Shown here piece after piece: positions 864-50,459 of a DNA stretch of 64,000 nt; position 1 is the stretch's first letter; each line of letters starts with the position of its first letter. The notes beneath the pieces are model-generated. The model was not told the origin of the DNA. It saw only the letters and a program-made list of their open reading frames with translations, and did not search any database. Source of the stretch: Octopus sinensis (taxonomy: Eukaryota); contig NC_043001.1 of assembly GCF_006345805.1 (NCBI RefSeq), positions 115,692,001 through 115,756,000 of the forward strand, given 5' to 3'. The translations under genes and the position numbers were made by a program.

Positions 864-877
864 TTAAATAGGAATAT
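864..877 (-). CDS. Probable terminal coding exon (D)IPI-stop, followed by 3'UTR
   Basis: cttcttacag|ATATTCCTATTTAA in phase 1; AATAAA on the minus strand at 704-709. Very short, so weakly supported. Confidence 0.5.
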
Positions 878-3215
878 CTGTAAGAAGTTTATCGTATATG
901 CAATGGAATTTTAATATTTTGAAAGGTTTTTAGGTGTGGCTGTGAGGTAAGAAGTTTAATTTCCAAACACATGGGTCTGGGTTTCGTCATATGATGTGGC
1001 ACCTTGGGCGAGGGTATTCTGCTATAATCCTGGGCTGACCAAAATCTTGTGAATGGATTTGGTATATATATAAGGGAGTGTGTGTGCCTTTGCGTTTGAT
1101 TCCCATCACCACTTGACAATTGTGTTGGTTTGTTCACATCCACATAACTTAGCAGTTTAGCAAAAGAAACCAATAGAATAAGTAAAAGGCTTAAAAATAA
1201 TAAGTACTCGGGTGGATTTGTTGGACTGAACCCTTGAAAGTGGTGCCTTAGCATGGCTGCAGTCCAATGACTGGAACAAATGAAAGACATGCATTAAGCT
1301 GCCTCTACTACTCAAAGAAAGAGTGAACCAAAATTTTGCTAACTCTTGCTCTAATGAATGAAATTTTATTATTCGATTGCTTATATACTTACCATCAGGT
1401 TTCCTTGAAACATTAACGTAAGAAATCTTCATGTCTTTAAAAAATTAGAAATAAAAACAATAAATAGCGTTATGTTAGTATTGTGTTGATACTACAATAA
1501 TAAATGCTAATGAGACAGACTCAAACACACTCATACACACATATTAAAGATAAAAGTTAGAGAATGATACATTTCATGACTGTTAGCTTTCTGTTAATGT
1601 TTAAGATAATTTCTAAGATCATGCTGTGTACTAACAATATTGTTTATACTTACCTGCTGGTTTCAATTCTAAATAACTGGGCCCACTAGCTTCAGCATAT
1701 TGCTCTTCATTAGCTTCAAAAAATTATAGAAAGATGTGCACATTTATTGTTTGGAGAGGATAGTTTTAATATTTTGATATTGTACAAAAAGTAACTAAAA
1801 AAAATAAAATACTAGTGAGATCTGTGGAAATTCCACAGAACGAAAGAGATTAAGCAAAGCTATTTAAGAAAGAAAGGATGATTGTTATTTGTATTTTGCT
1901 AAGTGATTTCACTTCCAGTTGCAAAATAGTATATGATTTTGAAATTTCCTTCTGCTAAGCACCTTATATTTCTCTCTTTCTCTCTACCTCTTCAACAAAC
2001 ATTTTAACCATGTAATTCCCATCTTCATGTCTTTAACATTTCCCTCTTTCTCTTTCCACCCTACAGTATGTCATTAACACTTCTCTCTCTCTCCCACTTT
2101 CCTCTCATCGTATTTGTGTCTTGCTCTTTGCCTCCCCCTTCAACTAACTACGTGATGCATTTGACCTTAGTGTATTATTATACTCCTCTCTTCTTCTTGC
2201 TTCTCTACTCACATTTCTCCCTCTCTCTCTCACTTTTACTGAACCTCTCACTCATTCCATTTCCACCTCTCTAACAAACTAAAGTATAACAGGTGAACAA
2301 ACAAGCAAATTATTATATAGTGTATATTTTATATGCAACAATGTTTTCACACATGCTACCCCAAGAAACCGAACTAAATCAGCTCTTCTAAACAGTATCT
2401 TTCTCTTCTTCACATTTCCTCTTCCTGCCATTAAAAACATCTCCTAAGTATGGTTCACCTCCTATTGACATTTCTCCTTTATCCTTACCATCAATGAGCT
2501 AACCTCCACTGTTGTTATTGATTTTCCCTTTTTCCACTACTCACCACATCTTACATCTGCTGCCACTTCCAACAGACATCCATTCCAGGTTCCTACCACA
2601 AATGATCCTCCACCCTTCAAATTGGTATCCCTTTCTTAATTTCCCCACTAATCACAACTGCCAGCCCCACAACTCATGACCCTATAATGAGCCCTCCATC
2701 ATTCTCCTGTCGAAAGTGCTATGCTGCTGCTGTAAGAGACAAAAATAGAATACACCATACATTTATACCATACATATTGCCATCTCTGTACTGTGAGTTG
2801 CCACTTCCTTTCCTTTGTACTATTTCCAGTCAGCATCTATTCCTTTTTCTTACTGTGTCCCCTTCTATACGTAAATCCTTTCCCTGTTCATGATTTATTA
2901 AAACTCCTATGTTCATTTGACCTGTTTCATTCCATGGTTTGTATTCACCTCCTTTTCTCCCAAACTCTTACAACCTTACACACCAGCATCCCTGATTCTG
3001 AAGTATCATCACTATAAATACAGAATGGAAGAAGATATGAGAGTGGAGGTCAAGTAGACAGCACGAACGTGTGTGTGTGTATATATATATGTATATGTGT
3101 GTGTGTGTGTGTGTGTGCGCATGTGTATGTATGCTTCTCTGGAGGCTGTCAAAATGATGTAGATGCCTCCAATGAGTAACAGATTTTGTTGAATATTCTG
3201 CTGCTTTAAATAAAG

Positions 3216-3264
<49 letters not shown>

Positions 3265-4140
3265 ATATATATATATAAGATGTGTTTCAAAGCACAGTAA
3301 GTTCATATTTATGTGAATTTTTGTGATGAAGATGATTCAATCACTCTTCATTGAACTGAATTGGTTGACTGCTGTGTAATCCATCCTTGAGGTCAAAATT
3401 CCCATTTTTGAAGCTCAAAAACCAATGGTGGGTAGTAGTTTGAGAAATTGCTCCTTCTCAATACACAGGACAAATCTCAAAAGCAGCTTTGGCAGGATTA
3501 ACAAATTGATTAAATGAAAAAGCAAATGGTGTGGAAAATGCTAAGTTTTTTACCTCTTGAAAGTGCATTTTAATGATCTGAAAATGCACAAAAATCAATA
3601 AAATTTAAAAAATCAAAATTCATCTTGTTGAGCAGAAATTTCTCTCAAATAACATAAAAGGTTTTGCCAATGTATTTTATTTCCGTGCACATTGTTAAAT
3701 GTGAAGAAAAGACCTATGAATTATTCCTCAGCCCAATGCGTTAAGGGCTGGCCAAAATCACTGGACAGCAAATCAAAACCATTTAATTCCAAGATTTACT
3801 TATGTTTAACAACTGAATGGGTTTAATAAAAGCAACTAAATGTAAAACATCATGGAAATTGTTCAAACTGAAGACCTTCTTGAGTGACACATTTTTCCAT
3901 TTGAGTCAATACAGAATTACAGCAGAGAGTATTTATGGAAATTTGATTTGCTGTTGGGTAACTTTTCATCAAACTGTATATATATATGGTGGTAGTACTC
4001 TGTCAGTTACGACAATGAGGGTTCCATTTGATCTGATTAATGGAACCGCTGGCTCATGAAATTAACGTGCAAGTGGCTGAGCACTCCACAGACGTGACTG
4101 CAAGTATGCTGCCCTAACAACTGGGCTATTGTGCCTCCAC

Positions 4141-4209
<69 letters not shown>

Positions 4210-7200: not shown

Positions 7201-7244
7201 AAAACGATTTCTATTCAATCTTCGTTCAACTCCATTTCTTCAAT

Positions 7245-7284
<40 letters not shown>

Positions 7285-7534
7285 TACACACATACACATA
7301 AAGTAAGTACAGATTGAGCAATGGGGTTGATGAAATTGATTTCTACCTCCTAAAAAATTGCTGGCCTTGTGCCAAACATTGAAACCAATGCAAAATTATT
7401 TGTCATTTGGTGTTAATTATACTTACTGAGAGCTTCATCTGGAATAGTTGCATAATTATTTTCAGTACCTTTAAGAAAAGAAATGGAAAATGCAAAACTT
7501 ATTATTTCAGTGTGTAGTGCATGGTATCTAAAAT

Positions 7535-7620
<86 letters not shown>

Positions 7621-10600
7621 CACATATACATGCACACACACACATGAAGTCCTTCTTGAGAGACACATTTTTCCATTTGAGCCAATACAGAATTACAGAT
7701 AGTATTTATGGAAATTTGATTTACTTTTGGGTGACTTTTGGTCAAATTGTGTGCGTATATATATAATATATATATATATGTATATATATATATGGTGGTG
7801 GTACTCTGTCAGTTACAACAACGAGGGTTCCAGCTGATCTGATCAATGGAACAGCTGGCTCATGAAATTAACGTGCAAGAGGCTGCTGAGCACTCCACAG
7901 ACATGTGTACCCTTAATGTAGTTCTCGGGGAGATTCAGTGCGACAGAAACAGGAAGTAAGAGTGAGAGAAAGTTGTGTTGAAAGAGTACAGCAGGGTTGC
8001 CCCTCCCCCCCTGCTGGAGCCTAATGGAGCTTTAGGTGTTTTCATTCAATAAACACTCATAAAGCCTGATCTGGGAATTGAAACTGCAATCCCATGACTG
8101 CAAGTATGCTGCCCTAACCACTGGGCTATTGCACCTCCACTATATATATATATATATATATATATTGTATGATGCATGTGTACGAACAGCCATGCTACAT
8201 GGCAGTGAAACATGGGCCGTGACTGCTGAGGATATGCGTAAGCTCGCAAGAAATGAAGCCAGTATGCTCCGATGGATGTGTAATGTCATTGTGCATACTT
8301 GACGGAGTGTAAGTACCTTGAGAGAAAAGTTGGACCTAAGAAGCATCAGTTGTGGTGTGCAAGAGAGACGTTTGCGCTGGTATGGTTATGAGGTGAGAAT
8401 GGATGAAGATAGTTGTGTGAAAAAGTGCCACACCCTAGCTGTTGAGGGAACCTGTGGAAGAGGTAGACCCAGGAAAACCTGGGACGAGGTGGTGAAGCAT
8501 GACCTTCGAATTTTAGGTCTCACTGAGGAAATGACTAGAGACCGAGACCTATGGAAGTATGCGGTGCGTGAGAAGACCCGGCAGGACAAGTGAGACCAAA
8601 ACCCATGGCCTCAGTCCACTTATGCATACCTTTCCTTCTTGGGACACAAAACTTTACTCGTGAAGACCTGTAGAGGCAAGTGAAAATCAAAATCAAAATC
8701 AAAATCAAAAATCAAAATCGATCAACATCAATGGAAATTGTAGCTGTGATACCAGTGCCAGTGGCACATAAGAGAACCATCCGAACGTGGCCGTTCCCAG
8801 CGTCACCCTGACTGGCTTCCATGCCGGTGGCACGTAAAAAGCACCATCCACTTGTGGCCGTTTGCCAGCCTCGTCTGGCACCTGTGCTGGTGGCACGTAA
8901 AAATCACCCACTACACTCATGGAGTGGTAGGCGTTAGGAAGGGCATCCAGCTTTAGAAACATTGCCAGATCAGACTGGGCCTGGTGCAGCCTTCTGGCTT
9001 CCCAGACCCCAGCTGCACCGTCCAACCCATGCCACCATGGAAACCGGATGCTAAATGATGATGATGATATATATATATATATATATATACACATACATAT
9101 ACATATATACACACACACACACACACACAAAAAGTAAGTACAAATTGAGCAATGGGGTTGATGAAATTGATTTCTCCCTCCCAAAAAATTGCTGGCCTTG
9201 TGCCAAACATTGAAACCAATACAAAATTATTTGTTATTTGGTGTTAATTATACTTACTGAGAGCTTCATCTGAAATAGTCACATAATTATCTTCAGTACC
9301 TTTAAGAAAAGAATGTGTCTGTCTGTGTGTTCCCCTAAAACTTGAGAACTACACAACCAATTTCATTCAAACTTCACACATGCCTTACTTAGGGTCCATG
9401 TACTTTCATGATCAAAAAAACGTTCGACTTCTTGTTTAAGGCGAGCCCATAGCAATATCATATCTTCTCCACTATTTCAGTATTACGTGTTAAAAGTGAA
9501 ACAAAAACTGACAATATTTTCACCATTTATACGGAAGCATTTTTGTTAGAATGCCTTCGATAGAAGAAAGTCCAAAATTGAATTTTGCTGCAGCCGTCAG
9601 CGGGTGCAAACTCTGGATCTGTAGTATGTCTGTTTGGGTGTGTACTCATTATTGTGAGGTTTCACATATCTTTCACATAATTCATGTGATACTTATGGTG
9701 TTATGGGTTCATAAGTTTGTATATAACTTGTAATGTCATGGATATGTGTGAGACCCATATATATCTGTGAGAGGAGCGCAGCATACGTTTATGAGGTCAT
9801 GTGTTTTTTCATGCATGAAGTTCATATAATGCGTATAACTGATGTTTGGAATGAAAATTTATCCAGGTTGCACGGGAGACAGAGTAGGTGGGGATATTTG
9901 CTTGAAATTTCAGAGTGTGAAATGCTGCTTATGCATGCAAGGGAAGAAGGTGTCATCCCTAATATTTAAAATATTCACTTTTGCTGTGATAATATTTAAT
10001 TTTTCAGTGATGTAAAGCTTGCATTTCCTGCCCCGTCCTCTGTACTTGTTGGCCTCAGCAATAATACTCCAGGTTATCTGGATGTTGCTCACACCTCTCT
10101 TTTTCAGTCTCTATACTTTATTGGCTAGGATTATTGTGTGTTTTTTGTTTTTGGCTCTGAACAAAGGTGTTATTTGAAGGTGTTCCCTATCATTCCAATA
10201 TATGTATTTGTTACTGTTCAAACCCATGTTATTGGTCTTATATACTAGTCCTTTTTCTGGGCACCCATTGTTCAGGAACAGCTATCTGAAGATCTAGAGG
10301 GGTTGGACAAAAGAATGGAAACACGTAGCATCATAATTTTCAAATATCTATAAAACCGTCAAACGTTTGTTTATGTTTATGTTTTTTGATTTATTATTAG
10401 TGTTGCTTAATATGTTTTGCTAAAATTGCTGTTTCTTTTCAGATATCAACAGAAAAAGTTAATTGAAATTCATTAAAATGACAGATCTATTGGACTTTCA
10501 AAGAGGTCAAATTGTGGTATGCGTATAGCAGGCGCTAGCGTAATGAAAACAGCTGAAGTGTTTGGTGCATCATGAAGTCCTGTCTCAAAAGTAATAACAG

Positions 10601-14693: not shown

Positions 14694-14744
<51 letters not shown>

Positions 14745-17700: not shown

Positions 17701-20700
17701 TTGAAATAAAACTGAATCATGACATACATACATATGGAAAACAAATGCTAAATGATGATGATGATGATGATAAAGAAACATCATCATCACCATCATTTAA
17801 CATCTGTTTTCTATAGACATTTGTGTGCGTGTGTGTGTGTGTGACAGAAAGTGTGTAAGGGATAAATTATCCAGGTGGGTACTGTAATAGCTCCCAGGTA
17901 TATTTCAGGTTATGGCTAATTGAATAAAGTAGTAATAAGCATCAATGCTCACTTAGTATGAGCAATCTTGCTTTGATTCTTTTGATGGGTGACTCTGGAT
18001 TCATTCCTCTGGATCATGAATATTATTAGGAGTGTAAATTTCAAACAATTACAAGAAATACAGAGACTGGTACATCATCAAATTTTTCTTTTCATTTTAC
18101 AGTTGGTCATCCATAATTAGTTGGTTAAAATGACCAACAGGTTTCTGCTCCACAGAGTATGTACAAATGCACATGCAACCCAGCATAATCTGCTGTGCAC
18201 CTTCATTCAGGGTCTTTCAACAAGTGTAGTTTGAAGCAAACTGAGTTTATTTATTTTTTCATGGCAAGTTTATTTCCTTATTCTTTCCTGTTTAAGATAT
18301 AAAGGGAAGTGATGAGGGATACGTTGAAATCTATAAAGTTTATCTTTAGGCTGCCGGCTAATTAACATCAGTTCCAGGAGGAAATTGGGAGTTTTATATA
18401 TATATATATATTAAATTAGGTCAAAGTATATCTTAGTGTTTTGATAGGCTTTTTCTTTATGTTACAAGAGATTGAATAGAATTAATATTAAACTTTGTTA
18501 TATTGATGGAGTTCTGTCAATATATTGTTTATGAAATCCAGAAGGAAGGTACACTTTAAAGCGAGTTTTATGTTATACATAAGTTATTGTACAATAACTT
18601 ATGTATAACTTATGTCTCTTCCTTGCATTTCCACTTCATACACTATGCTTACCTTCCACTTCCAAATCCTGTCCTCTTGGCCACTTAAAAAGCATCCAGT
18701 CTACACCGAAAAATGGTTAGCATTTCTAAGGGCATCCAAACCTTTCCAAAACTGACCTTGCCTGTGCTTGTGCCATGTAAAAATCACTAAGCCCACTCTG
18801 GTGAGTGGTTGGTGTTAGGAAGGGCATCCAGCTGTAAAAATCCTGCCCAAACAGTAAAAGAAGTCTGGTGCAGGATTCTGCCTCGCCAGCTCCTATCAAA
18901 CTGTCCTACCCTTGCCAGCATGGAAAGTGGATGTTAAACGACAACGATGATAATGATGTTATGCATGTTGTCTATACAACTGGAATATACCTGATGCATT
19001 TCTTTCCGGACATTTAGCATCCACAGAGAGAACCTCTCTGTTGTCAACAAAGGCAGTTGCTCCCTGGACTTTTATAACCTATCCTTACTCCACCTATTAT
19101 GCTTTCCCAACACTCATTTCTAATGCTGATTAAGACAGTTAAGTTATGGAAGATACCAACTATTATCAAACTTGAGAAATTTCCTTTATTTCTTGGGAGT
19201 GCTTTTATGAATGAAATCCCTTTCTCTATAAGCCTGTCTTGTACTTTTTGTGTACTTATTGTTTACATTGGTTATATAGTATAGAGTGTTTACTGGCTCC
19301 CTTTCTACATAATGAGTGTGGCTACATCCAGTTTGGAATAGTGTTTTTTTTTTATTTTCTGCAAGCTAAAAATTTCATTTTTGCCAAAGTAACCTTTAGG
19401 CCCTTTCATTCTAGGCTCTGCTTTTATGTTAGGAACTTTTCTCCAAAACCTTTACCTGAACTGATTATGAGTACCTATGGCTGCATTTATGTAGAACGAA
19501 TTGTTCTTGATGGTTGACCACTTAATATCTTACTTTTTTGCAACATGGTCTCTTAATAATTTGTCTGTCTAACTAAATTCATCTTTTCCTCATGCAAATT
19601 TCTTAAAAACAAAACTTACCTTTTGCTGATGAAGTCCTATTAAATTCACAAAATAATTATAAAATAAGATAAAATAAAATAAAATAAAATAAAATAAAAT
19701 AAAATAACAACCACCACCACAACCACCACAACCACCACAACCACCACCACCACCACCGCCACCACCATCATCATCATCATCATCATCATCATTATTATTG
19801 TATAATTGTTCAATATTTGTTAGATTGAGACAAATTTCTACTGCATCACCTGCTACACTGCTGTGTTGCTGGGGGTTGCAGCATTGTATGTTCTTTTCTG
19901 CTGTTGGGAGTGTGCATCTTCCCAGTACTGTACTGTATTACCTTTTTTCCCTTGAGATGTGGTGCTGTCTTCTGTTGCATTACTGCTTATATTATGTGTT
20001 GAGTGTGTAGTGCTTTGGTTGTTTTAGCTTGCAGGTGGAAGTATATTTCACTGGGTAAATGATGTATAGAGTGTGTCTTGTATTTGTATGTTGTTTTGTT
20101 TAGGTTGTATTATTGGATTGATAGTGTCTTGCATAGAATGTGGGCTGTTCATAGTAGGGCTATTTTTTAAAAAGTGTGTAGTGTTGAGGATCCAGGTATA
20201 GCTTCTACGCTTTTGTTCATATGTTTTTTTATCATGCCCAATGCTCCAGTTATTATTAGTATTATTTTTACCTTCATGCCCCACACTTTGAATACTTCAT
20301 TATCACCATTATCATTATTCATATACACACAACACATTAGACTGTTGGAAAAGAAAAAATCCTAACATTGGGCTACAACACGTAACCTTAGATGCCAAGA
20401 ACCCTTCTAAGTATCCTAGCTGTCCCTAATAATACTGTTTTCTGCAACTGTACTAAACTGGGTTTATACCTATTTCCTCTATTCATCTTTTCAAATATTT
20501 AGAGATATTTCCTAATGCACCTATAAGTACTGGAATACATTTTACCAGCACTTTCCATAGTCTCTGTAATTCAATGGCTAGGTTCTAATAATTTGCTGTT
20601 TTTCTATACTTCTCATATTGATTTTTTCATCATTTGGAACTGTAAAGTCAATTATCTAGCACTTTCTATTCTCTTTATCTACTACTACTAAATCAGGCCT

Positions 20701-38300: not shown

Positions 38301-41300
38301 TTATATGCATTCGTTCACTGTTTCCCTATTTCAGCAAAAATGCCTTACTACATTTAAAACAACTCCACTTAAACTACATAGAAAATATTTAAATAAACAC
38401 ACTAAAAATAGTTAATCAACCTGAAAACTTCACTAAAACTGAGGGAGTAGTTTCCCAATATAAGTTTTGCCATCTTCACACCCTACTCCAACAAACCAAA
38501 CTACATCTCTCCTCTTACTCACATTTCCCCTTTTATGCACTATGCTTATCTCTTGCTCCCCAGTTCTGTCCACACTGCACTGCTCACAGTATCATTACTA
38601 TCCTGTTGTCCCCTACCCACTCTATATGCCCAGGTTTTAACAGTCACTGCATACCCCACCCCCACACACCTTGCATTCACTCTCTATACATGTACCTTGG
38701 CAACTCCCTCCCTTTTATATTCTAACCCCATGTCTTTAGAGCATACTCTTCCACTTTGCTACCACTTATCTCCTCCTGGCTCTTCTCTACCATCCCATTT
38801 ATATTCTGATCCCCATTCCTTATGAGCATGCTCTGGTGCTTTACCACCATCTCTCTCCTGCTCTCTTGCACTCTCCCTCTTTCTCCTGCTCTCTTGCACT
38901 CTCCCTCTTTCTCCTGCTCTCTGACAATCTCCCTCTTTCTTTTGCTCTCTTTCACTCCCTTTCTCTATTCCTTAGACTGGTTAACTATGTATCACTTCTA
39001 CAGCAACACACCCATTACTGGTCTCAATCTTGATCACTTCTTCTCTCTCCTTCTGACTGGGTAATCATGTATCTCCTCTACAGCAACACATCTATTTGTT
39101 TCTCTGTCATACACTAACTTTTCATCATCTGGCACAAGATCACCTCCAATGCCACATCCTCTCTCAAAGGATCTTTATCTTACAAGTTATTTGGTGACTC
39201 TGTTAGTGTTGGTGCCACATAAAAAGCATCCATTCCACTCTGTATAGTGGTTGGCGTTTGGAAGAGCATCCAACTGTTAAAAAAAACATGCCAAAACTGA
39301 TCTCAGTTGTGCTGGTGTCACATAAGCATTCAGTCCATTCTTTGGAGTGGTTGATGTTAGGAAGGGCACCTAGTCATAAAAATCATGTCAAAACAGAAAG
39401 CATAGCATGGTGCAGTCTTCCGCTTAGTGACCTCTAGTCAAAATGTCCAACCCATGCCAACATGGAAAGCAGATGTTAAATGATGATGATGATGGTGATA
39501 ATGATGATTTCTGAAAGGAAAATTATTTGTACTTACAAATGTAATACTGAGCAAGAAACAAAGCTAAACTAGACGCTCTGACATTAAAACCCAGAGCTGA
39601 CTATAACACTTAAACTGAAAGTAGAACTTTAAGTACTTTATGAATATATTAATAAATTACAAACAATTCTATATAACATAAAATAACATTCTAAATGATT
39701 AAAGAAGCATGTAACAACTTACTCTTATATCTCAAAGTAAAAACAACAGTTTCTTTTCCTTCGGAGTTTTCCACTGTTAAGGTATAAGTATCTATAACAT
39801 CATCTTTGGTGTCTTCTATCTTCAAACTAGTACAGCTTCCTTTGAAAGGAAACTCATTTGGGAAATAATCAGTTATTAAATATTTGTTTGAGTCAATTGA
39901 TTCCTCATTTTTCTGCCATTTTACATCAGATTTTGGATGCGAATAAAAACACTGTTTCAAAATTACAGTTTCTCCATTGGAAACATTTCTCTGTTTTGGA
40001 CCATTTGATCCTGAACTGAACATAGGTCTCACTGGTGGAAAAAATAAGAAAATATTAAAAGAGAAAATACACATGTACTAGAAATTAAATATTTTCTGAA
40101 ACTAACAATAAATATTCTAAATTATCAATTGAAGATTATTGTAAGTTTTTGGTATAAATATGATGAAATAATGCTTTCTACTATAGGCAAAAAAGCCTGG
40201 AATTTTGAGGAAGGGGCTAGTCAATTATATCAACCCCAGTGCTTAACAGGTACTTATTTTATCAATTCCAAAAGAATGAAAGGCAAAGCAGGCCTTGGTG
40301 GAATTTGAACTCAGACTATGATGCATATGGCAGTATAACCAAGCATTTAGAGTACTGATTGGTGCAGTATAGGAGAGGGTAATGTGAATTAGCAATGGCA
40401 AAAGGCCACAAGTAGTGGGGCATGGGAAGATAAAGGTTGCAAGCCAGCCACTGTAAGGAAGAAGAATGATCGAAAATGGGGAAGTAGGAGTTTTCTGTTG
40501 ATTCTGATGGTAAATATCACTTGTCACTTTTTACCATCAAGAGACCTGAGCTTGTCATACGGTGCTAAGAAAAAAAGGTGGTAAAGCTGACAGTTCCCTA
40601 AGAAGGTAACATCGAAGATGCTCTCCTCAGGAAAGAAAATATGATAAGGTGTTTAAACTTTGGGAAAACAATGGAAGAGAGGTAATATACCTTCCTGTAG
40701 AGACAAATGTCAGAGGATTTGTTGGAATCAGGGTTCACTTGATGCTCAGGAGTTTTGGATTAGGTGCAAATGACACAAAAGATGTTACAAGAAAATTGCC
40801 AGAAGTTGTCAAGAAAGCAACTTATTATATCTTCCTGAGGAGAGAGCATGAGTGACGAAGCAAGAATTAGCAATGAGGATGGTAGAAATAACTGATCCAG
40901 AGTTGCAACATCTGATCACCAAAGCTTGTGCTGTTGCATGCTTATGTTGTTGTTTACACCAGTAGGTGGCCCTGGACAGTTCTAGTGTCATGATGGAAAG
41001 GGCTGAAACACCCACAGAGCTGCTTTACTGCCCAAAAAGAAATCAATGCCTGCATATAAGTTTTTAGCTCCTTGATTGCAATTAAACAGACACTTGCTAA
41101 TTAGACATCCAGCAACTTTGTCAAAAATTCTTTTCCATCACTTTTTAACAAACCCAGTACCATGAACATATGTTGTATTTGCTATCCACAGTGAATCCAG
41201 TTTAACCTTCTACACACAACAAAACATTCAATCAGTTACTTTTTTTCAACTCTATTCATTATTTAAGATGTCACTATTATAGCTTCTAATTTAAAACTAC

Positions 41301-44300: not shown

Positions 44301-47300
44301 TGGCAGACACCTTTTGCATATGCAAATGGTCATGAATGATAGTTTCCACAGACCCGGTACTAATCTTGACCTCATGGGCTATTTGGGAAATAGTTATGCG
44401 TCGATCTTCCAAAATGGCAGCCTCAACTTGATGGACAAATGCCTCATCAATGGCAGAAGGGGGGGGGGCGACCAGATCTGGGAGCTGTTTCCACAGAGTT
44501 CCGACCATGTTTGAATTCACGATACCAGCGTTTTACAAGGTCATATGATGGGGCATCATCACCATAAGTTACTTTCATTTCATCAAAAGTCTCCCGTGGT
44601 GTGCGTCCTTTCAAATACAAAAACGTGATCACTGCTCGACACGCAACAGGCTCCATTTCACACTTGACTCAGTTCAAACACCTGTAAATAGGAAACCACA
44701 ATTAGTTCAGAGCTGTAATTTGCCACTTAATCTATAGAGATATAAATAATTGCACATGCAAAATTTCAGCTAGATCAAACAACTGCAAGTGGGTCAGGGG
44801 CATTACTTATTGAACGTCCCTTGTATGTTTTAAAAATAACTGTGGCTTTGTAAAATACTTGCCTGGAATTTTGTAGTTTGATGACTTAATCACAAGAAAA
44901 TCATCATTGCTTACATGACACTCCCATGTACCAGTATTACTGAAGGAAGGATTTATAGATAATACTTTTATATCATAAGTATTCTTAATGGTGTTTCCCC
45001 ATTTTTGCTTCAGTTCATATTTATGATTTGCTGGATTTCCACCAGATGCAGTGCAACTAATTATTATTTTATTTGGCTCATTTGAAATATGAATGTTTAC
45101 TTGAGGAGGATCTTAAAAAAATAAAATAAAATAAAATAATCAAGGAAGGGTTTCAATTTAGAAAATAGGATTAAGATTCAAAATTTCAGTTTCATACACA
45201 TTTTAAATTCAGATTCTATGATTGTCGTTGAACATGTTTCTCATACAGGATATCAAAGTAAAATACAGTAAGCAATCTAAACCACCACAATCTTGGGACA
45301 ATTTGAGCTTGGCCCTGTGGCTAATGAAATCTTTATAAGGTTTTTAAGATTTACAGGAGGTTGCAACAGTGAGATGTACTTCCATGCAGTACTTGTATCT
45401 AGATGGGTAGATTGTCCATTGAGAAATAACTGTATTCACCAGGAAGATAGTTTACTGAGGTGTACAGTAAACAAACAATTCATGAAATTTCTACTAATAA
45501 TATTCATAAAAATTGTCAACCCATACAGATATAAGAAATTAAAATCATTTCACAATGAAATTTCTTCACATAACATGCAAAAAATGCCTCTCAATAAGAG
45601 AAATTAGAAGCGTTCTTCAGTAGATCATGGGAAAAAGGATATATCCGTTCTTCATCACAATATCAATGTAGTGTTTAAATGTATCCATTTATGGTAATAG
45701 CATGATAGGAAGAAAGTGGTAAGATGCCAGACAAATGAAACCAAAGTAATTGAAAATACTGGGTCAAAAGATTCAAATATTAAGTTTTTATGTTGTTGAA
45801 GTTGATGTAGTTTTCATTCTGAGAACAAAATATAAATAAACTGAATAAAATAAATTATTGAAGTAAATACGTATATAGTACTGAGATGAACTTTTTAAAT
45901 GAACTCTTTAAATTTAAACAGTTAGCTTTGCTTTTTTTGTCTTCCTATCATTTTTAATTAGAGCCCTCTATCCAAAGTTATGGGTTTAAAACCAAATAAA
46001 CAGTTGTATATCTTTTGGTTAGATTTGAATGGAACCTTTACTTTTGATGCCCTTATCCATAGATGCTTATGATTTTCAATTGTACATCAGACATTATGCT
46101 TTTGTCTTGTCATCCCTAATCAAAGTTTCTCAATCTCTTCTGTAATGATATTTAGGGTTTTTTCATTTCCACACTGAAAAATTTGATAAATGCATTATAA
46201 ACATAACTCTTTGATTTATCCAAACTTGAAGACTGAATGTGACATCTTTGAAATTTGTTGTATTGATTTGATTGTATAACTAATACAGAATCTTTGTATG
46301 TTTCTAGGCGACTGTTTGTTGTAAAGTGGAGCTAACAGTGATTGGGGATTTCATTGCATACATATAGAAGAATACAGGTTATTTATTGCAGAAAAATATG
46401 GTCTCCAAATGACTGCTTATATTTGAAAAAATACTTCAATAGGATAGACACATTTTCTTGATGCTTTAAATCACCTCCTTTTCCTTCTCCTTCTTCATAT
46501 CCACTCTCCATGATGGCAAGGAAGGGTAGTCACATATGGGACCTTACTGAGACCGCTGTTTTCATAGACAAGTTGGAAGACTATGCCACATTTGGCTAGG
46601 TTTTGACTATGTTTCAATAGATAGATGTGCTTCCTATGACCAACCTGTACACAGAGTGTACTAAATGTATTTTAGTGTAGTACCACCACTAGAGAAGTTG
46701 TCATATCTTTGGCTAGAGAAGACCAAATACACATCTTGACTCTATGCTTTCTCTGTTCATTTACAGCTACTTTACAGAGTGTATTGGGTGCATTTTATTG
46801 TGGAACCAGTATTAAAGACGAGGTTATGTCCTCAGCAAGAGAGAACTGAAGGGATCTCTTGACTCTATGCTTTCTCTGCTTATTTACCAACACCTTAACA
46901 GAGTGTATTGTAGATATTTTTTCTCATCACTATAAGAGTAGTGAGACTCAAAACTGCGACAGAGTCCAGTGGATGATGTTTATTTTCCTACTGTAAATGC
47001 CTCTCCCTGGCCACTCAGAAACTGGAGTTGCCCAAAAAAACATAGCTGAGCCAAAATGCACATTTTATTGCTACATTTTCAGAAATATATATATATTTAA
47101 ATTGCTTAATTACTGGCAATATAAAGTGTATCTCACATTTTATTTGGAAGTTCAATAGTCTTGTATAGGCATTTTTATAAGTTATATTAACTAGTGACAT
47201 ATTTTGCAATAACTATTCAAAATATTGATCTAGTTTGTTTCCGAAAGTAGAACTTCACCAAAAAAAGAGCCCCCCCTCCCACCAATCATTGTGAGCAAGC

Positions 47301-50300
47301 AAATCACATTAAAGTTGATGACTTGAAAACTAGATCAATATGTCCCATTTTTCATGGGTGCTGTAAAATGAACTAAAAAAAACAAACTCTTTTATTAGTT
47401 TATTGAAATGTACAGCACCCATGAAAAATGGGACACTTCAATCAGTAAGAAGGGAAATAAATTTTGCTGGTAACAACTCATAAAAGAATATGTTGAGTAT
47501 CTACAGCTGGCAACTGATCTTGACAGAATCTTGAGTAATTGTGTGTTTGTAGATTATATATGTGTGTAACAAGTTATTTTGCATTTAATTTTGGCATGCC
47601 TAAAGGTGTGATTAGTGTGTATTCTACTCTGACATTATTGAAGTTGCATTTCCTTTCACAGCAGAAATGATTATGATGCTGCTGTCATCAGGACAATTTG
47701 TGATGACATTCATTTCTTCTTAAAATATGTTTTGGTTTAAAATGTTTGCCTTGCTCAGTAAATTTTTGTCTTTCCAGGTTAGCTCATATTTTCCAGTTTT
47801 TTAACAAACATTTTACTGAAAATAATGATTTCTAGGTAGGAGATGTAATCAAAAGTTTTATTGAAAACTTAGCTTCTCTAATTTCAAAATTCAGTGAGCT
47901 ACCTTCAGTTAAGGATAATAAATAAGTTAGGTTGGGTACATCATATGCTTTGCGACATCTTCTATGTGAACTGCATTAGTCTATTCAAATTCAAAATGAG
48001 ATAATGCTTCAGTGGCATTGAATATAAAATCAAAATTTTTAGGTTTTGAATTGATCCAATCAATAATTGTTTTGACAAATTTTGAGTTCAATGTCTTATT
48101 TATCAAGTTTCTATCCTAGGGAGAGATATTTCAATTAAACAGGTCTCTGTAAAGCATAAATTTGACACCTGTCTATCCATTAATAGTGCATAAGGATACT
48201 GAAATATTACAGGAGAAATTAAATGTGCCCACTTAAAACCTAGTAAAAAGGATATCAATATTTAGAAATTGGGCAGTTGTAGATGTTTACAGAATACACC
48301 ATTTGAAGTAGGGTGGTTGTAGAGAGCAAAATATGGACTTTAGAGACCAGAAAATTTACAAACACCCATATTCATTTAAACTGGAGAAATTGATGTGATG
48401 TTTGGTCACAATAAATCCCTTAGTAAAATCAAGGATCAACAAACCCAAATTATCTTTCAGTTCTTTTGTTCATATTTACAGGTCATGCTCTTAATCTGAG
48501 GGAGTTCTTTTGAAGCTCAACAACAATATTGCACAGAATGGATGTCATTAAAATAATTCTTAAAGTAAATAGAGTGAATACAGCAGGGTCAGTGTTAGAA
48601 TAATGATTTTTTTAGAGATCAGTCAACAAAAATTATTTGCAGACATTATCTTTCACAAACTCTCTAAGAGTGGTAAGACTGATACAGCTTATGTTCAGTT
48701 GTACACATCAATATCTACAGGCAAGTCATAGGTGAGAAGGGAATTTCACATTGTTCAACTCTAAGAAGGTTTGATTATGCATAGTGGTCAATGAAATACA
48801 GCATTGACGAGAAGAATGGGAGAGATAGATGTATTGGGTGAACTTGGATGGAGGTTGTTTAAAGCTAGGAGCAGTGATCAGAGAAATAATAATAGAAGAA
48901 GCAGAGAGAAGAGAAGCACGTGTATGGGCGAGAGATGGTATGTGTTACTGAGTCATTATCAATTAGTGGGGCTTTCACTGAGCAAATCTGTCCTGGGTGT
49001 AGGAGCAGTAATTCTTTGTGGATCTTACTTGAATTTTGTAGAAAATCAGTAATTGCTCAAAAGCTGAAATATTTTCTACTTCTGAAGCGAAAAGGTAGTC
49101 TTTAGGATACTGTTTCAGTTAGGTTATGTGGGTTTTCAGGATATATTACCAGAAATTGTGAAACCTACCTTTTATAGTGACTATGACCTTAATATTAATC
49201 AGTTTTGTCCTCTTCAGTTCCACACAGGCTGACTTTATTTTTCCTTACTTTTAACTGATGAAGTAGTATTGATTTCATGACTACACTCCTTCCTTAAATA
49301 ATTAACCACTTTACTGATCAAAAAGACTGAACTCCATTGCAGAATGATTGGTGATAGGAAGGGCATTCAGCTGAAAAGCCTATCACAACCCCCTAGCATA
49401 AAAAAAATCATATACACCAGAGACAGATGATGTAAGGAATATCAGATGATGATGGACTATGACAAGTGGCAAGGGCTGAGGTGGAACAAATCCTTCTAAC
49501 TCATGCCAGCATGGAAAAATAGGCATAAGACAATGATGATAATGATGATGATCATCATCATAGTTTAACGTCCACTTTCCATGCTGGCATGCATTGGACG
49601 GTTCGACTGAGGAGTGGCAAGCCAGAAGGCTGCACCAGGTTCCAATCTGATCTGGCATGGTTTCTACAGCTGGATGCCTTTCCTAATGCCAACCACTCTG
49701 ATAGTGTAGTGGGTGCTTTTTATGTGCCACCAGTATGAGCGCCAGTCAGGCGATACTGGTATCGATCACCTCAAATGGTGCTTTTTATGTGCCACTGGCA
49801 ATGACCATGCTCAAGTGGTGTTTTTTACATGCGTGTCGCTCACAAGTGAAGATGACCCACAAGTGAAGATGATTTTAGACACTTATGCAATCACAAGGAG
49901 ACATAAATGCCCTGTCAGTGTACCCACTCTTGACCCAGTAGATCATCAAGGAGGTGTTGCTTGAAGAGAGAGAGGGCTGCACCAGCACTTAGCTGGTAGT
50001 CATTTTCAGCTGAGTAGACTAGAGCAATGTGAAGTGATGTGCTTTGCCCAAGGACACAATATGCCACTCAATCTGAGAATTTATACAAAGAAGTAAAAGA
50101 CATTTGATGATGGTGAGGATATTAGTGATAGTAGTAGTAGTAACAGTAGTAGTAGTAGTAGTAGTAGGAGGAGGAGGAGGAGGAGGAACAAATATTTATA
50201 TTTAACATACATTTCAACAGGATATTAATTTCCTTTCTATCTCGGAAATTTCCATTCTTTTCACTCTTTGCAATGGCAGAGCAGAAAACACGACTGATAT

Positions 50301-50459
50301 TTTTACGATTAAAAGTTAATATTGAATTTGAAAGGAATTTTCGATTTTCATTCTCCAACCACACTTCTGGGGTAGGGTTTCCTTTTGCATTACAGTCTAT
50401 AATGGATGCTTGATTCTCAAATAATGTCACATTCTCTGGTGCAGTAATATCAGGTGGAT
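864..50459 (-). CDS. Spliced gene (3' portion): Ig-superfamily single-pass transmembrane receptor with a tyrosine-motif cytoplasmic tail; 5' exons not found in the window
   Basis: Ten exons read by eye, each with AG acceptor and (internal exons) GT/GC donor. Phases are compatible at every junction except Ig3 to TM. Junction codons give typical Ig linkers (LLK-Y-PPQV, KIP-V-RPMF). Confidence 0.85.
930..1290 (+). mobile_element. tRNA-derived SINE (octopus-type)
   Basis: tRNA-like head ggtgtggctgtg...gggtttcgtc, body gtggcaccttgggc...caaaatcttgtgaatggatttggta; related copies at 16003-16075 and 28500-28900. Confidence 0.7.
1393..1434 (-). CDS. 42-nt cytoplasmic exon MKISYVNVSRKPD (ISYVNV: ITIM consensus and Grb2-type YxN motif)
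   Basis: ttttttaaag acceptor, G|gtaagt donor, phase 1-1. Confidence 0.82.
1654..1713 (-). CDS. 60-nt cytoplasmic exon NEEQYAEASGPSYLELKPA (two Tyr)
   Basis: ttttttgaag acceptor, CAG|gtaagt donor, phase 1-1, open. Confidence 0.82.
3305..3560 (-). mobile_element. Mariner transposase N-terminal remnant, same family as 42106-43352
   Basis: Reverse complement aligns by eye with 42330-42490 (ttcaaaaatgg-aattttgacctc...agttcaatgaagag). Confidence 0.6.
4413..4504 (-). ncRNA. Second copy of the hammerhead in the PLE 3'UTR, with a 1-nt core deletion (CTGAAG-GAAAG), probably impaired
   Basis: Same as the 7109-7201 motif except for loss of A9 (+ strand 4481-4500 reads gtgtctttccttcaggaaga). Confidence 0.7.
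4799..4995. repeat. Two diverged tandem units of about 100 bp in the PLE 3'UTR
   Basis: Both units share gcggccg..agttggtaa..gctctacac/gcgctacac..tggtcactgctg..aaatccgtc..aaatattttatgtgt. Confidence 0.8.
5174..6934 (-). pseudogene. PLE RT (C-terminal half) + GIY-YIG endonuclease, one reading frame with a single in-frame TAG at 6044-6046
   Basis: ORFs 6044..6934 and 5174..5959 are in frame (84 nt between them); read-through gives KNLA*IIASHNNRLL. Confidence 0.9.
7109..7201 (+). ncRNA. Type I hammerhead ribozyme (minimal palindromic stem III), intact core, in the inverted pLTR
   Basis: CTGAAGA 7118-7124; stem II GAAAG-A-CACAAT / ATTGTG-C-CTTTC; GAAA 7180-7183; palindrome ACACGTGT 7183-7190; GUA cleavage triplet ending at 7191; stem I TTC/GAA plus TATT/AATA. 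Confidence 0.8.
7427..7468 (-). CDS. 42-nt cytoplasmic exon TENNYATIPDEAL (YxxI motif)
   Basis: ttttcttaaag acceptor, A|gtaagt donor, phase 1-1; peptide visible at the end of ORF 7413..7745. Confidence 0.82.
7794..8140 (-). mobile_element. tRNA-derived SINE; internally deleted paralog at 3987-4140, related copy at about 62140-62440
   Basis: Minus-strand head gtggaggtgcaatagcccagtggttagggcagc...gtttcaattccc; shared body catgaaattaacgtgcaag..gctgagcactccacagac. Confidence 0.7.
8166..9066 (+). mobile_element. RTE-clade LINE 3' end (RT C-terminus + 3'UTR + (GAT)n tail), inserted in (TA)n
   Basis: LYDACVRTAMLHGSETWAV...RRLRWYG..RM...GRGRPRKTW in ORFs 8078..8302 and 8318..8593; ends atgatgatgatgat. 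Confidence 0.9.
9258..9299 (-). CDS. 42-nt cytoplasmic exon TEDNYVTISDEAL (YxxI motif)
   Basis: ttttcttaaag acceptor, A|gtaagt donor, phase 1-1; paralogous to 7427-7468. Confidence 0.82.
9315..9510 (+). repeat. Dispersed repeat (Helitron-5'-like) with an inverted paralog at about 29100-29330
   Basis: tgtctgtctgtgtg...taaaacttgagaactacac...tattacgtgttaaaagtgaaac matches the reverse complement of 29100-29330. Confidence 0.65.
9900..10290 (-). mobile_element. Second Penelope-like remnant (GIY-YIG only), truncated at the Tc1 left end
   Basis: GLVYKT..YIGM..FK...ITWSII....KCKLYITEKLNII....LNIRDD..FPCMH (ORF 9910..10092 plus upstream frames). Confidence 0.75.
10297..11554 (+). mobile_element. Full-length degenerate Tc1-superfamily DNA transposon (Incomer/DD36E-like), 1258 bp
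   Basis: TIRs (g/c)aggggttggacaaaa(g/t)aatggaaa with TA on both sides (10295-96, 11555-56); frameshifted transposase MTDLLDFQRGQIV...PTVKHGGGS...FQDDNAPIH...PDLNIIEHLW from 10478. Confidence 0.9.
11640..12460 (+). mobile_element. Third Penelope-like remnant (RT thumb + GIY-YIG C-terminus), heavily degraded
   Basis: YIYILSNYPK...IRISSLSTNKDIFNNHAPHYNQA..ISGF (about 11795-11960) aligns with the thumb of the 4207-7250 element; LLNRFSDVILSCKHRF near 12395-12445. Confidence 0.65.
14693..14880. repeat. (TAG)n and derived trinucleotide microsatellite
   Basis: Perfect tagtagtag run of about 50 bp decaying into gta/gca/gtg triplets. Confidence 0.95.
15140..15890 (-). mobile_element. RTE 3'UTR/SINE copy with an internal VNTR of four 62-63-bp units (15313-15562) and a further unit at about 15826-15890
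   Basis: atgtgccaccgac recurs at 15318, 15381, 15443 and 15505; (CAT)n tail at 15142-15160; same UTR as 8600-9066. Confidence 0.85.
17235..17675 (+). mobile_element. R4/Dong-like non-LTR retrotransposon C-terminal remnant (CCHC knuckle + restriction-like endonuclease)
   Basis: AILEQETSTKYL...CRPC..DITHIISSCPK..SQYYLPIRYDVVA...EYWWNVPVK...KHNKPNIMI. Confidence 0.65.
18572..18609. repeat. Perfect 38-bp palindrome
   Basis: gttatacataagttattgt|acaataacttatgtataac equals its own reverse complement. Confidence 0.95.
19620..19636 (-). CDS. 17-nt microexon (R)TSSAK(G) converting phase 2 to phase 1
   Basis: tttaatag|GACTTCATCAGCAAAAG|gtaagt; phases exactly bridge the TM exon and the phase-1 tail exons. 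Confidence 0.7.
19800..20400 (-). mobile_element. R4/Dong-like non-LTR 3' end remnant
   Basis: Minus strand KVWGMKVKIILIITGALGMIKK...*KIALL*TAHILCKTL; adjacent (TAA)/(TGA) repeats at 19770-19800. Confidence 0.6.
20770..21760 (-). mobile_element. RTE-BovB-like LINE remnant with an inverted 5' part (+ strand 21460-21760)
   Basis: Minus strand: TKVKVYEAALLPMLLYACE...MPD..LP.RLVYSELMEGK; plus strand: DKFTSMVCQFH...VKKGCVLAPMLFS (RT domain, ORF 21482..21982). Confidence 0.7.
23830..25635 (+). mobile_element. Two degraded RTE LINE segments (3' end 23830-24530; internal 24690-25635)
   Basis: LYDAYV..VMLHGSETW...GRGRPRKMW and EPIEGPAIRVD..KAIKDMKA...QFRFCTWK-like RT entry. Confidence 0.75.
26261..26766 (+). 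mobile_element. Non-autonomous Helitron, 506 bp
   Basis: A|TC start at 26261; 3' hairpin acccatgcgtagagcgggt then CTAG (26763-26766) followed by T. Confidence 0.6.
27110..27450 (+). mobile_element. RTE APE-endonuclease fragment
   Basis: TIISAYAAQ...GDFNGHVG...GGYSFGSNNEEGTRMLEFCDANDLMVCNT.F...SQIDYIL. Confidence 0.8.
31480..31700 (+). mobile_element. Possible Neptune/Poseidon-type Penelope C-terminal remnant
   Basis: GEHIESCARNLNPNFLIFP...E..FINKYLPQLN resembles PLE GIY-YIG C-termini; degraded. Confidence 0.45.
32191..32297 (-). CDS. Transmembrane exon: KSKQEIPMEIIIGCTVGIVLLLIIMGSYLYILQKRR
   Basis: atcatctttcag acceptor, AG|gtttgt donor; a hydrophobic stretch of about 23 residues followed by a basic stop-transfer QKRR; phase 0-2. 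Confidence 0.85.
32400..34440 (-). mobile_element. Degraded RTE LINE (RT to 3'UTR)
   Basis: Antisense of ORF 33639..33893 reads LLFADDHAL...RVNLAKTKVL; HQGSVLSP motif at about 33905-33930; 3'UTR with (GAT)n at 32405-32420. Confidence 0.75.
34720..35880 (+). mobile_element. Degraded RTE LINE (RT to C-terminus)
   Basis: KAFDKVP...HQGSVLS...LLYADELVLIAE...KTKVL. Confidence 0.75.
39723..40031 (-). CDS. Exon, membrane-proximal Ig-like domain: RPMFSSGSNGPKQRNVSNGETVILKQCFYSHPKSDVKWQKN...DTYTLTVENSEGKETVVFTLRYK
   Basis: ttttttccaccag acceptor, A|gtaagt donor, 309 nt, phase 1-1; overlaps ORF 39691..40074. Confidence 0.9.
42106..43352 (+). mobile_element. Full-length degenerate mariner (DD34D), about 1.25 kb
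   Basis: TIR ttgggttggcaactaagttcct (right end 43352 followed by TA; diverged left end at about 42106); MECQVKRNEHFR..., MLCIWWDWEGIIHYELL, HDN..HPPYSPNLAPMDF; several stops. Confidence 0.9.
43526..44823 (-). mobile_element. Full-length mariner (DD34D), 1298 bp, transposase nearly intact
   Basis: 37-bp TIRs with 2 mismatches and TA on both sides (43524-25, 44824-25); ORFs 44447..44656 and 43672..44520 joined by a frameshift at a G/C homopolymer; WIPRLL, TQDETW, QDNAPVH, YSPDLAPSDF. Confidence 0.95.
44863..45111 (-). CDS. Exon, Ig domain: PPQVNIHISNEPNKIIISCTASGGNPANHKYELKQKWGNTIK...NTGTWECHVSNDDFLVIKSSNYKIP; non-canonical GC donor
   Basis: (TTTTA)n + taag acceptor; open for 249 nt, phase 1-1; B-strand Cys and TGxWxC motif; ends CCAG|gcaagt. 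Not in the ORF track. Confidence 0.88.
47341..47435. repeat. Perfect 25-bp inverted repeat with a 45-nt spacer (Tc1-TIR-like, inside-out)
   Basis: tgtcccatttttcatgggtgctgta ... tacagcacccatgaaaaatgggaca. Confidence 0.9.
49540..49810 (-). mobile_element. RTE-related SINE / 3'UTR copy
   Basis: (CAT)n + tttaacgtccactttccatgctggcatg...ctacagctggatgcctttcctaatgccaaccactc; other family members at 18690-18960, 25725-25900, 36850-37060, 39190-39505 and 55690-55860. Confidence 0.8.
50211..50459 (-). CDS. Exon, Ig domain (I-set/C2-like): PPDITAPENVTLFENQASIIDCNAKGNPTPEVWLEN...VFCSAIAK...INILLK
   Basis: Poly-T tract + tag acceptor, gtatgt donor, 249 nt, phase 1-1, C...W...C Ig pattern; overlaps ORF 50122..50430. 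Confidence 0.9.

Follow-up and report, generated by a model that had tools for sequence, protein, structure and literature searches.

Which protein do the short, widely spaced exons on the minus strand of a 64,000-nucleotide stretch of Octopus sinensis DNA encode (NCBI RefSeq assembly GCF_006345805.1, contig NC_043001.1, positions 115,692,001 to 115,756,000, hereafter the window), and what would its tail signal? The original prediction, made from the letters of this stretch, was a receptor of the immunoglobulin superfamily (IgSF) whose tail is built from exons with one tyrosine motif each and which may be an immune or neural adhesion receptor acting through inhibitory motifs, as in SIRP, Siglec and PECAM proteins. 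Our analysis supports the first part: this is a cephalopod type I IgSF receptor gene with a non-catalytic tail encoded by frame-neutral, one-motif-per-exon cassettes. As for the second part, we put a probability of roughly 0.6 on another reading, namely that the locus belongs to a coleoid-specific, multi-copy family of type I receptors whose tail is a modular scaffold for docking SH2 proteins, and that the copy in the window, as assembled, is defective in its transmembrane (TM) exon.

The exons of the receptor are real. All of the receptor coding signal lies on the minus strand of the window (Table 1), in animal DNA that is AT-rich and laden with repeats, and the exons are more than a product of chance because the RefSeq XP models of O. 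sinensis LOC115229375 splice the same exons in the same order. The three phase-1 Ig exons were confirmed by recomputing their bounds and by Pfam, which matches their translations to I-set (E = 1e-13 for exon C), Ig_3 and Ig_2. The four symmetric phase-1 tail exons of 42, 42, 60 and 42 nucleotides (nt) are likewise as predicted; their acceptors are AG and their donors GTAAGT throughout, and RefSeq models match them. It had been said that most tail exons are invisible to annotation by open reading frames (ORFs), and this is true of ORF scans but not of RefSeq, which models them in sister copies of the gene. A permissive tblastn search of the window with the tails of six paralogs returned no cassette and no terminal exon beyond these four.

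To tell the related loci apart, we call the O. sinensis scaffolds of LOC115230708 and LOC115229375 L001 and L006, the locus of the paralog LOC115212119 L002, the O. vulgaris copies L003 and L004, and the cuttlefish locus L005. The non-canonical GC donor of exon Ig-B is conserved in L001, L003, L004 and L002 and is used by RefSeq models. One point of the exon map had to be changed: a single phase-converting microexon had been described, and there are two, A and B, the first passing from phase 1 to 2 and the second from 2 to 1. AG acceptors and GTAAGT donors flank the two, which at 36 nt together are frame-neutral. They were located via the RefSeq tail model of LOC115229375. The 19-nt microexon A occurs also in L004 and L006, with 2 substitutions, and is spliced as GVKRNK in isoforms X1-X3 of LOC115229375; microexon B is identical in L006 and is used by RefSeq. 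The microexon described earlier was probably B, and its apparent solitude is a by-product of the frameshift in the TM exon discussed below. A scan of the window for a microexon (AG, 3n+2 nt, GTRAG donor, strong polypyrimidine tract, phase 2 to 1) returned none, its thresholds being too strict.

Table 1. Exons of the receptor gene and related features in the window, in the order of transcription where they are exons.
Feature	Position	Strand	Description
Ig exon A	50211..50459	-	249 nt, phase 1 to 1; YPPDITAPENV...INILLK; matches P0001, P0002; Pfam Ig_3
Ig exon B	44863..45111	-	249 nt, phase 1 to 1; GC donor CCAG/gcaagt
Ig exon C, membrane-proximal I-set domain	39723..40031	-	309 nt, phase 1 to 1; family signature CFYSHPKSDVKWQKNE
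TM exon	32191..32297	-	107 nt; frame broken as assembled
Microexon A	22364..22382	-	19 nt, phase 1 to 2; GTTTTAAATGCAATAAAGA, read (G)FKCNK
Microexon B	19620..19636	-	17 nt, phase 2 to 1; GACTTCATCAGCAAAAG, read E-TSSAK-G
Tail cassette, type C	9258..9299	-	42 nt, phase 1 to 1; TEDNYVTISDEAL; 1 nt different in the L006 ortholog, which RefSeq X1-X3 include
Tail cassette, type C duplicate	7427..7468	-	42 nt, phase 1 to 1; TENNYATIPDEAL; skipped in RefSeq X2, X3
Tail cassette, type B	1654..1713	-	60 nt, phase 1 to 1; NEEQYAEASGPSYLELKPA; two tyrosines
Tail cassette, type A	1393..1434	-	42 nt, phase 1 to 1; MKISYVNVSRKPD; YxN motif; skipped in RefSeq X3
Tandem duplication behind the two type-C cassettes	7249..9313	-	234-nt copies at 7249-7482 and 9080-9313
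Terminal exon implied by the original prediction	864..877	-	ag/ATATTCCTATTTAA; unsupported

The tail is where the locus departs most from a generic Ig receptor, and its cassettes fall into three types, for each of which we derived a profile from 7 to 10 genes or copies. Type A (14 amino acids (aa), xMDxAY(V/I)N(V/I)SKKP, n=27) keeps its tyrosine in 81% of cases (22/27), asparagine at +2 in 93% (25/27) and serine at +4 in 85%. Type B (20 aa, VEEQYAE(V/I/A)SxPxYLE(M/L)KQP, n=25) has a first tyrosine in 68% of cases, with glutamate at +2 of it in 96%, and a second in 88%, with methionine (68%) or leucine (24%) at its +3. Type C (14 aa, E(D/E)xxYAT(I/L), n=11) has an acidic stretch upstream of a tyrosine that is kept in at least 82%, followed by threonine at +2 (91%) and isoleucine at +3 (82%). 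The original prediction depended on conservation of the tyrosines in relatives, and they are indeed conserved, with 68-88% kept across the cassette types. It may be added that in the Y-x-N-x-S core of type A the asparagine and the serine are kept better than the tyrosine itself; N-x-S resembles a glycosylation sequon, for which there is no obvious use in the cytoplasm.

The mini-exons arose by tandem exon duplication, keeping their shared splice-site flanks. The two type-C cassettes of the window lie in 234-nt copies that are 92% identical and 1831 nt apart; there are two type-C copies in the window and in L006, one in L003 and none in L004. The paralog at L002 has 12 tail exons after the TM exon, that is, 42- and 60-nt cassettes, then a 57-nt exon and the terminal exon; three of its 60-nt cassettes are identical, and all cassettes are of phase 1 with shared ttcttaaag acceptor and G/gtaagta donor flanks. 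In the cuttlefish L005 every NGNEPQYINxxN unit is a separate exon of ~60 nt. As to constraint, the QYAEA and ISYVNV exons of the window are 100% identical in L003, L004 and L006, and taken with 40-nt flanks they show 0-1 differences from the three copies where 4.6-7.4 would be expected from the adjacent intron (P = 0.001 to 0.06, in comparisons that are not independent of one another).

Since the cassettes are frame-neutral, the original prediction held that each can be skipped and that combinatorial tails are possible. The annotation backs this idea, because entire cassettes distinguish the RefSeq isoforms, both in the O. sinensis gene and in a paralog from O. bimaculoides. The tail of isoform X1 of LOC115229375 reads GVKRNK-ETSSAK-GTEDNYATISDEAL-SAENNYATIPDEAL-NAARANAISSKPN-TNEEQYAEASGPSYLELKPA-DMKISYVNVSRKPD-VVEEQCAEVSEPKYLEMGQR-NTDGTYVNVSKKPA-DGTYVNVSKNLL-VTNEGLCSTDEQKEPRSFQN up to the stop; X2 is without the second NYATI cassette, and X3 without both that cassette and ISYVNV. 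In O. bimaculoides the isoforms X1-X8 of LOC106874069, from 785 to 751 aa, drop single 14- or 20-aa cassettes in combinations, so that DVEDVYATISSEPS, TVEEQYAEISEPKYLEMKQQ and NMDGAYVNISKKPG are present or absent singly or in pairs, and there are two alternative C-termini. These isoforms are RefSeq predictions, and hence the support is at the level of annotation and is not read-level proof. As far as is known, an alternative isoform enters the NCBI annotation only if aligned transcripts back it.

What the motifs mean is best judged from what recurs across the family, which is YxN, YxxM/L and the acidic E(D/E)xxYAT(I/L). The YVNV of the window, which had been singled out as a Grb2-type pattern, contains the pY-x-N core as a sequence pattern and belongs to the family-wide YxN cassette, that is type A. 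The ITIM, or immunoreceptor tyrosine-based inhibitory motif, written [SIVL]xYxx[IVL], is another matter: of the five tyrosines in the window only that of ISYVNV fits it, the paralog tails have 0-2 sites each, and from average residue frequencies we estimate that ~0.3 matches are expected by chance for five tyrosines. Given these recurrent motifs and an ITIM count close to chance, the tail looks like a multi-SH2 docking scaffold. We propose that the tail is cytoplasmic and that, when the Ig ectodomain binds ligand or clusters, the tyrosines of this acidic, unstructured region would become phosphorylated. Every included cassette would then add one docking site for an SH2 protein: YxN for a Grb2/Drk-type adaptor, YxxM/L for a PI3K-p85-type or other SH2 protein, with the acidic YATI cassette being hemITAM-like (half of an ITAM, the immunoreceptor tyrosine-based activation motif). 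Because each included cassette would add a site, exon choice together with the germline number of cassettes would set the signalling output, as expected of a docking scaffold and not of dedicated ITIM inhibition.

The inhibitory reading, in which a phosphorylated (I/V/L/S)xYxx(I/V/L) recruits an SHP-type phosphatase next to a Grb2 site, as in SIRP, Siglec or PECAM receptors, is in our opinion improbable. It can appeal to ISYVNV itself and to PECAM-1, whose six Ig domains and single TM segment are followed by a non-catalytic tail in eight short, alternatively spliced exons, and which loses a tyrosine motif and SHP-2 binding when exon 14 is skipped (PMC5664058; details of the ITIMs in PMC5314882). 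It can also appeal to two distant family members, P0014 of O. vulgaris and P0036 of Argonauta hians, which end in NYAEL/VYADL followed by TIYAD(L/I), a pair resembling an ITIM with an immunoreceptor tyrosine-based switch motif (ITSM). Yet besides the low count of ITIMs given above, the isoleucine at -2 of ISYVNV is specific to this copy lineage, the homologous cassettes having G, D or N; the full O. sinensis tail contains no ITIM-ITSM partner motif, although receptors of this kind usually have a second ITIM or an ITSM at a distance of about 20-30 residues; and in the ectodomain no homology to SIRP-alpha, Siglec or PECAM-1 was found, Pfam matching generic Ig models only. The inhibitory logic of the original prediction is thus not one we can uphold. 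As for activation, no tail contains a strict ITAM, Yxx[LI]-x(6-8)-Yxx[LI], the nearest being a lax pair YVTI...YATI with x11 across the two type-C cassettes of the window. That the tyrosines are instead YxxPhi sorting signals for adaptor complexes, making this an endocytic, phagocytic or scavenger receptor in which cassette number tunes internalisation, we consider quite unlikely. Four of the five window tyrosines, and most in the family, do fit Yxx[LIVMF], and such a role would agree with a multi-Ig ectodomain on a short, non-catalytic tail. However, the best-kept positions besides the tyrosine are N at +2 in type A and E at +2 in type B, neither of which YxxPhi requires; a strongly acidic stretch upstream of each tyrosine is typical of tyrosine-kinase substrates; and many sorting signals in tandem would be unusual. 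The pair in P0014 and P0036, ...EC(N/V)YA(E/D)L... then ...TIYAD(L/I)... with ~20 residues between, is the only place in the family resembling an ITIM/ITSM tandem, and P0014 has in addition four to five (D/E)LYAKVNKP repeats.

It is at the membrane anchor that the copy in the window, as assembled, fails. The predicted TM exon is present, but as assembled it cannot link Ig domains, helix and tail in one frame. Elsewhere this exon has 102 nt (L001) or 105 nt (L004 of O. vulgaris and the paralog L002), runs from phase 1 to 1 and reads KKQEIPMEIIIGCTVGIVLLLIIMG(L)LTYIFYKR(G/R). The 107-nt exon of the window equals that of L001 with zero substitutions, plus an insertion of GCAA near the 5' end and one extra T. 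When all window exons are joined, the frame is lost within the TM exon, the helix is gone and a stop falls in the first cassette. A path from the TM frame through microexon B alone into the cassettes is open, but only with a TM exon that begins in phase 0, whereas Ig-C ends in phase 1. Checking alternative AG acceptors of the TM exon by hand gave no in-frame join to the phase-1 donor of Ig-C, and neither including nor skipping microexon A with the TM exon kept restores the frame. Only transcripts of the window that skip the TM exon remain in frame, through all cassettes. Thus the window is without the in-frame TM exon (102-105 nt, phase 1 to 1) that links ectodomain and tail in the family, and as assembled this copy cannot encode a membrane-anchored protein bearing the tail. 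It is a damaged or mis-assembled member of the family and not a non-member, since the TM exon is clearly homologous; the copy or haplotype has either decayed or been mis-assembled locally.

Between decay and mis-assembly the evidence is divided. That both indels are assembly artefacts, and that the real locus encodes an intact receptor of the design seen in the O. sinensis copy of L001 and L006, is a possibility which we take seriously without favouring it. Both indels lie in contexts prone to slippage (AAGC-AAGC and a run of T), the exon has otherwise no substitution relative to L001, three further 1-nt indels occur within 25 nt upstream, and every other exon is intact with good splice sites. 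On the other side, a 4-nt duplication is atypical of homopolymer error, and in the surrounding 1.4 kilobases (kb) the window has 58 private substitutions against 19 in L001 and 26 in L004; because of this roughly 3-fold excess we regard the region of the TM exon as truly diverged and not merely noisy. The sister copies, moreover, carry independent and unambiguous lesions: the donor of microexon B is changed from GT to TT in both L003 and L004, L003 is without the region of the TM exon, the part corresponding to 21.9-32.6 kb of the window being rearranged there, and L004 is without the type-C cassette. In O. vulgaris the damaged exons are left out of models P0005 and P0002. One could also suppose that the locus works mainly through products without a TM segment: Ig proteins in soluble form that end in an acidic C-terminal tail and serve, for instance, as decoys or secreted recognition factors. 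The in-frame splicing of TM-skipped window transcripts and the modelling of L003 without this exon (P0002) are consistent with this, but conserved docking-type tyrosine cassettes have no obvious extracellular role, the TM exon is intact in most copies, and P0002 is a weak model that ends by reading through into an intron. We therefore find such a function very improbable.

Our preferred reading, a docking-scaffold receptor of which the window holds a TM-defective copy, has its own difficulties. About 1 in 5 cassettes is without its tyrosine, the SH2 partners are assigned by short-motif resemblance only, and the cassette-skipping isoforms are Gnomon predictions. Several sister copies are damaged as well, as seen from the lesions of L003 and L004, so a whole sub-lineage may be decaying, and on the other hand the TM-exon indels of the window could be assembly errors. 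The ratio of non-synonymous to synonymous divergence (pN/pS) in the Ig domains is ambiguous too: it is 0.65-0.73 relative to O. vulgaris and ~1.1 relative to a paralog, with 12 non-synonymous to 1 synonymous differences relative to L001, and this range, 0.65 to about 3, fits either diversifying selection or decay, and fits relaxed constraint also.

Of one copy of this multi-copy receptor gene, the window covers the central portion and the greater share of the 3' part. A search of 5.8 billion proteins gave only nine relatives, all from Octopus (E = 1e-183 to 1e-64), the best being XP_029656702.2 (O. sinensis LOC115230708, annotated as 'partial') with 94% identity. L001 is collinear with the window between 28.2 and 63.1 kb (94-98% identity) and L006 between 3 and 29.2 kb (95-98%). 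Since L006 begins where L001 stops and both are collinear with the window, LOC115230708, which has the Ig exons and the TM exon, and LOC115229375, which has the tail, are two halves of the same single gene divided between unplaced scaffolds, and the window spans the join. L003 and L004 are collinear with the window as well (92-97% identity). The window comes nearest to the O. sinensis scaffolds but is identical to none of these four, and it represents a further copy or haplotype, or one from a closely related species. RefSeq lists this gene and its paralogs (LOC115212119 and LOC115212114 in O. sinensis; LOC106874069, LOC106874055 and LOC106880794 in O. bimaculoides) as uncharacterized. These models share with the window the exon order, the phases and the three cassette types, with identical QYAEA and ISYVNV exons; they differ in that the window joins two RefSeq genes, has a TM exon of 107 nt in place of 102 or 105, and is without a 31-kb segment containing AARANAISSKPN.

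The gene extends past both ends of the window. The end that had been proposed near position 864 does not hold, as L006 continues with four more exons after ISYVNV, the first ~0.7 kb past the left edge of the window and the terminal one ~13 kb past it; L004 shows the same extra cassette pairs downstream. The terminal exon at 877-864 was rejected after comparison with L006, L003, L004, L007 (a further locus, on which the exact mapping of P0054 was poor and left unused) and L002: no RefSeq isoform uses it, every YxN cassette is followed by a repeat of the intronic block in which it sits, and most paralogous copies of the site lack the AG. The terminal exon of the paralogs, which ends in (G/D)YQ and a stop, is not homologous to this site. 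At the other end, the Ig exons farther upstream and the signal peptide, which P0002 and full-length paralogs show, lie off the right edge. The 31-kb difference is an insertion or deletion between window positions 3180-3303 and L006 positions 31188-62701, and the cassette exon in this L006-only segment is degenerate, having lost its tyrosine, although it is included in RefSeq X1-X3.

Some annotations would need correction, quite apart from the counting of one O. sinensis gene as two. The 5' coding exon of XP_029656702.2 is a homolog of a PIF1-like helicase fragment present in the window (see below), and UniRef accordingly names the protein 'ATP-dependent DNA helicase'; in LOC115230708 this exon looks like an annotation artefact. 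In O. vulgaris, P0076 (CAJ1099246.1, on the same 12-Mb scaffold as L003) is a 957-aa model named 'adhesion G-protein coupled receptor G6-like', which ends with the tail cassettes TEDNYATIPDEAL, NEEQYAEASGPSYLELKPA, MKISYVNVSRKPD and so on, followed by retroelement-like sequence. It is probably a chimeric gene model that fuses tail exons of the receptor to an adhesion G-protein coupled receptor.

How far does the family reach? An exhaustive profile search of 1.84 billion protein representatives gave 19 at E<1e-30, the weaker matches being generic Ig proteins. Its named members come from O. sinensis, O. vulgaris, O. bimaculoides, Argonauta hians (906 aa) and, more distantly, the cuttlefish Acanthosepion pharaonis. 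Judged by sequence, it is an orphan lineage within the IgSF, and members turned up in coleoid cephalopods alone (Octopus, Argonauta, cuttlefish). A full-length member begins with a signal-like N-terminus and has about seven Ig domains; basic residues come after its single TM segment, and the tail is 120-280 residues long. The predicted absence of kinase, phosphatase and TIR domains is borne out, in that the complete O. sinensis tail, down to its end in VTNEGLCSTDEQKEPRSFQN, has no catalytic domain and Pfam finds no cytoplasmic domain in the tails of full-length paralogs. The solved structures nearest to the ectodomain are those of titin, VEGFR2, FGFR1 and Robo1, at E = 4e-6 or weaker. The window shares with the family the membrane-proximal Ig homology (tblastn exon matches and alignment), including the CFYSHPKSDVKWQKNE block whose columns are invariant in the family alignment, and a tail made of 42- or 60-nt symmetric phase-1 exons that share their splice flanks and belong to types A, B and C. 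An elephant-shark protein, P0071, which is CEACAM1-like and has YAKV-type tail motifs, was treated as a generic Ig match and not as a family member.

PECAM-1 is the closest analogue of these genes in design and not a homologue. The shared principle is that of motif-bearing cassette exons, seen on the octopus side in predicted isoforms, and there is no detectable sequence relationship. PECAM-1 has two ITIMs, whereas in the octopus family the cassettes, of three repeated types and mostly YxN and YxxM/L, can number 12 or more, come from recent tandem exon duplication and vary in number between copies and haplotypes. Among invertebrates, the fester co-receptors (FcoR) of Botryllus schlosseri carry ITIM, hemITAM and other tyrosine motifs in tails that are switched by allele and by alternative splicing; their genes sit in haplotypes with presence/absence polymorphism, and a role in allorecognition has been shown (PMC11507803). 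Both are invertebrate receptors with tyrosine-motif tails, but lineage and gene structure are unrelated: FcoR genes switch motifs by intron retention and new stop codons, the octopus genes by arrays of symmetric cassette exons. The sequence EDDVYAIL, given as the canonical hemITAM in the Botryllus study (PMC11507803), resembles the octopus type-C cassette as a pattern only. FCRL proteins likewise combine ITAM-like and ITIM elements with spliced tails (PMC4950983).

Multi-site docking of the kind we propose is familiar from other proteins. LAT, Gab/DOS, CD28 with YMNM and nephrin with YDxV have unstructured acidic regions with several YxN and YxxM/YxxV sites and collect Grb2, PI3K and Nck-type SH2 proteins. 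The octopus tails are similar in this respect without being homologous, and those proteins do not have one skippable exon per site. The family member P0007 of O. vulgaris has been automatically named 'synaptogenesis syg-2-like', SYG-2 being the nematode counterpart of nephrin. We reject an identity with nephrin or SYG-2, which this label alone suggests: those proteins have eight Ig domains and an FnIII domain, whereas Pfam finds no FnIII domain in the full-length paralogs P0016 and P0030, and the tail motif is YAE[VIA], not YDxV.

In our view, then, this appears to be an undescribed, lineage-restricted family that takes the known cassette-exon design to an extreme, with whole tails made from recently duplicated, frame-neutral mini-exons, and of which the window holds an apparently defective copy. 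A literature search found no paper on these octopus genes or on a cephalopod ITIM/ITAM receptor, nor any description of a cephalopod cell-surface receptor that signals via tyrosine motifs, for which this family with its clear docking motifs is now a candidate. With cassette number varying among gene copies and inclusion varying among annotated isoforms, it offers a natural case in which to study the programming of signalling output by exon duplication and splicing. A further idea is that these are haplotype-variable recognition receptors, whose output is set by germline gain and loss of cassettes as well as by skipping in transcripts. We find this unlikely, though conceivable; the hemITAM-like cassette is present in 0, 1 or 2 copies among near-identical gene copies, and the paralog with three identical 60-nt cassettes gives another example of gain. 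If true, and taken with the fast evolution of the Ig domains (pN/pS 0.65 to about 3), it would make the family a molluscan counterpart of the KIR/LILR or Botryllus FcoR variable immune or self-nonself receptors, or else a neural recognition code.

The neighbourhood of the exons is rich in repeats and remnants of mobile elements. Upstream of exon Ig-A, at 51584-55075, lies a 98-bp satellite of 35.6 copies with 98% identity; its 30-nt core occurs 35 times in the window, 12 times in L001 of O. sinensis, once in L003 and not at all in L004 of O. vulgaris, and thus the length of the array varies between copies. The PIF1-like helicase fragment (63432-63917, minus strand; Pfam PF05970, E = 1e-19) is probably a Helitron remnant. 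The intron between Ig-B and Ig-C holds two remnants of Mariner/Mos1-type transposases, one with an HTH_48 domain (42234-42626, plus strand) and one with a Transposase_1/DDE_3 ORF of 282 aa (43672-44520, minus strand), of which L002 has a 93%-identical copy. At 56060-57373 (minus strand) there is a remnant of a reverse transcriptase of the long interspersed element (LINE) type, with RVT_1 (E = 3e-20) in a 171-aa ORF followed by a 260-aa ORF that has no Pfam match. Finally, two ORFs of 261 and 296 aa at 5174-6934 (minus strand), both with no Pfam match, lie in a segment (window ~3.8-9.3 kb) for which the O. vulgaris copies give no alignment; because the second contains a YRDD motif reminiscent of the active site of reverse transcriptases, a retroelement has probably inserted here, between the NYATI exon and the QYAEA exon.

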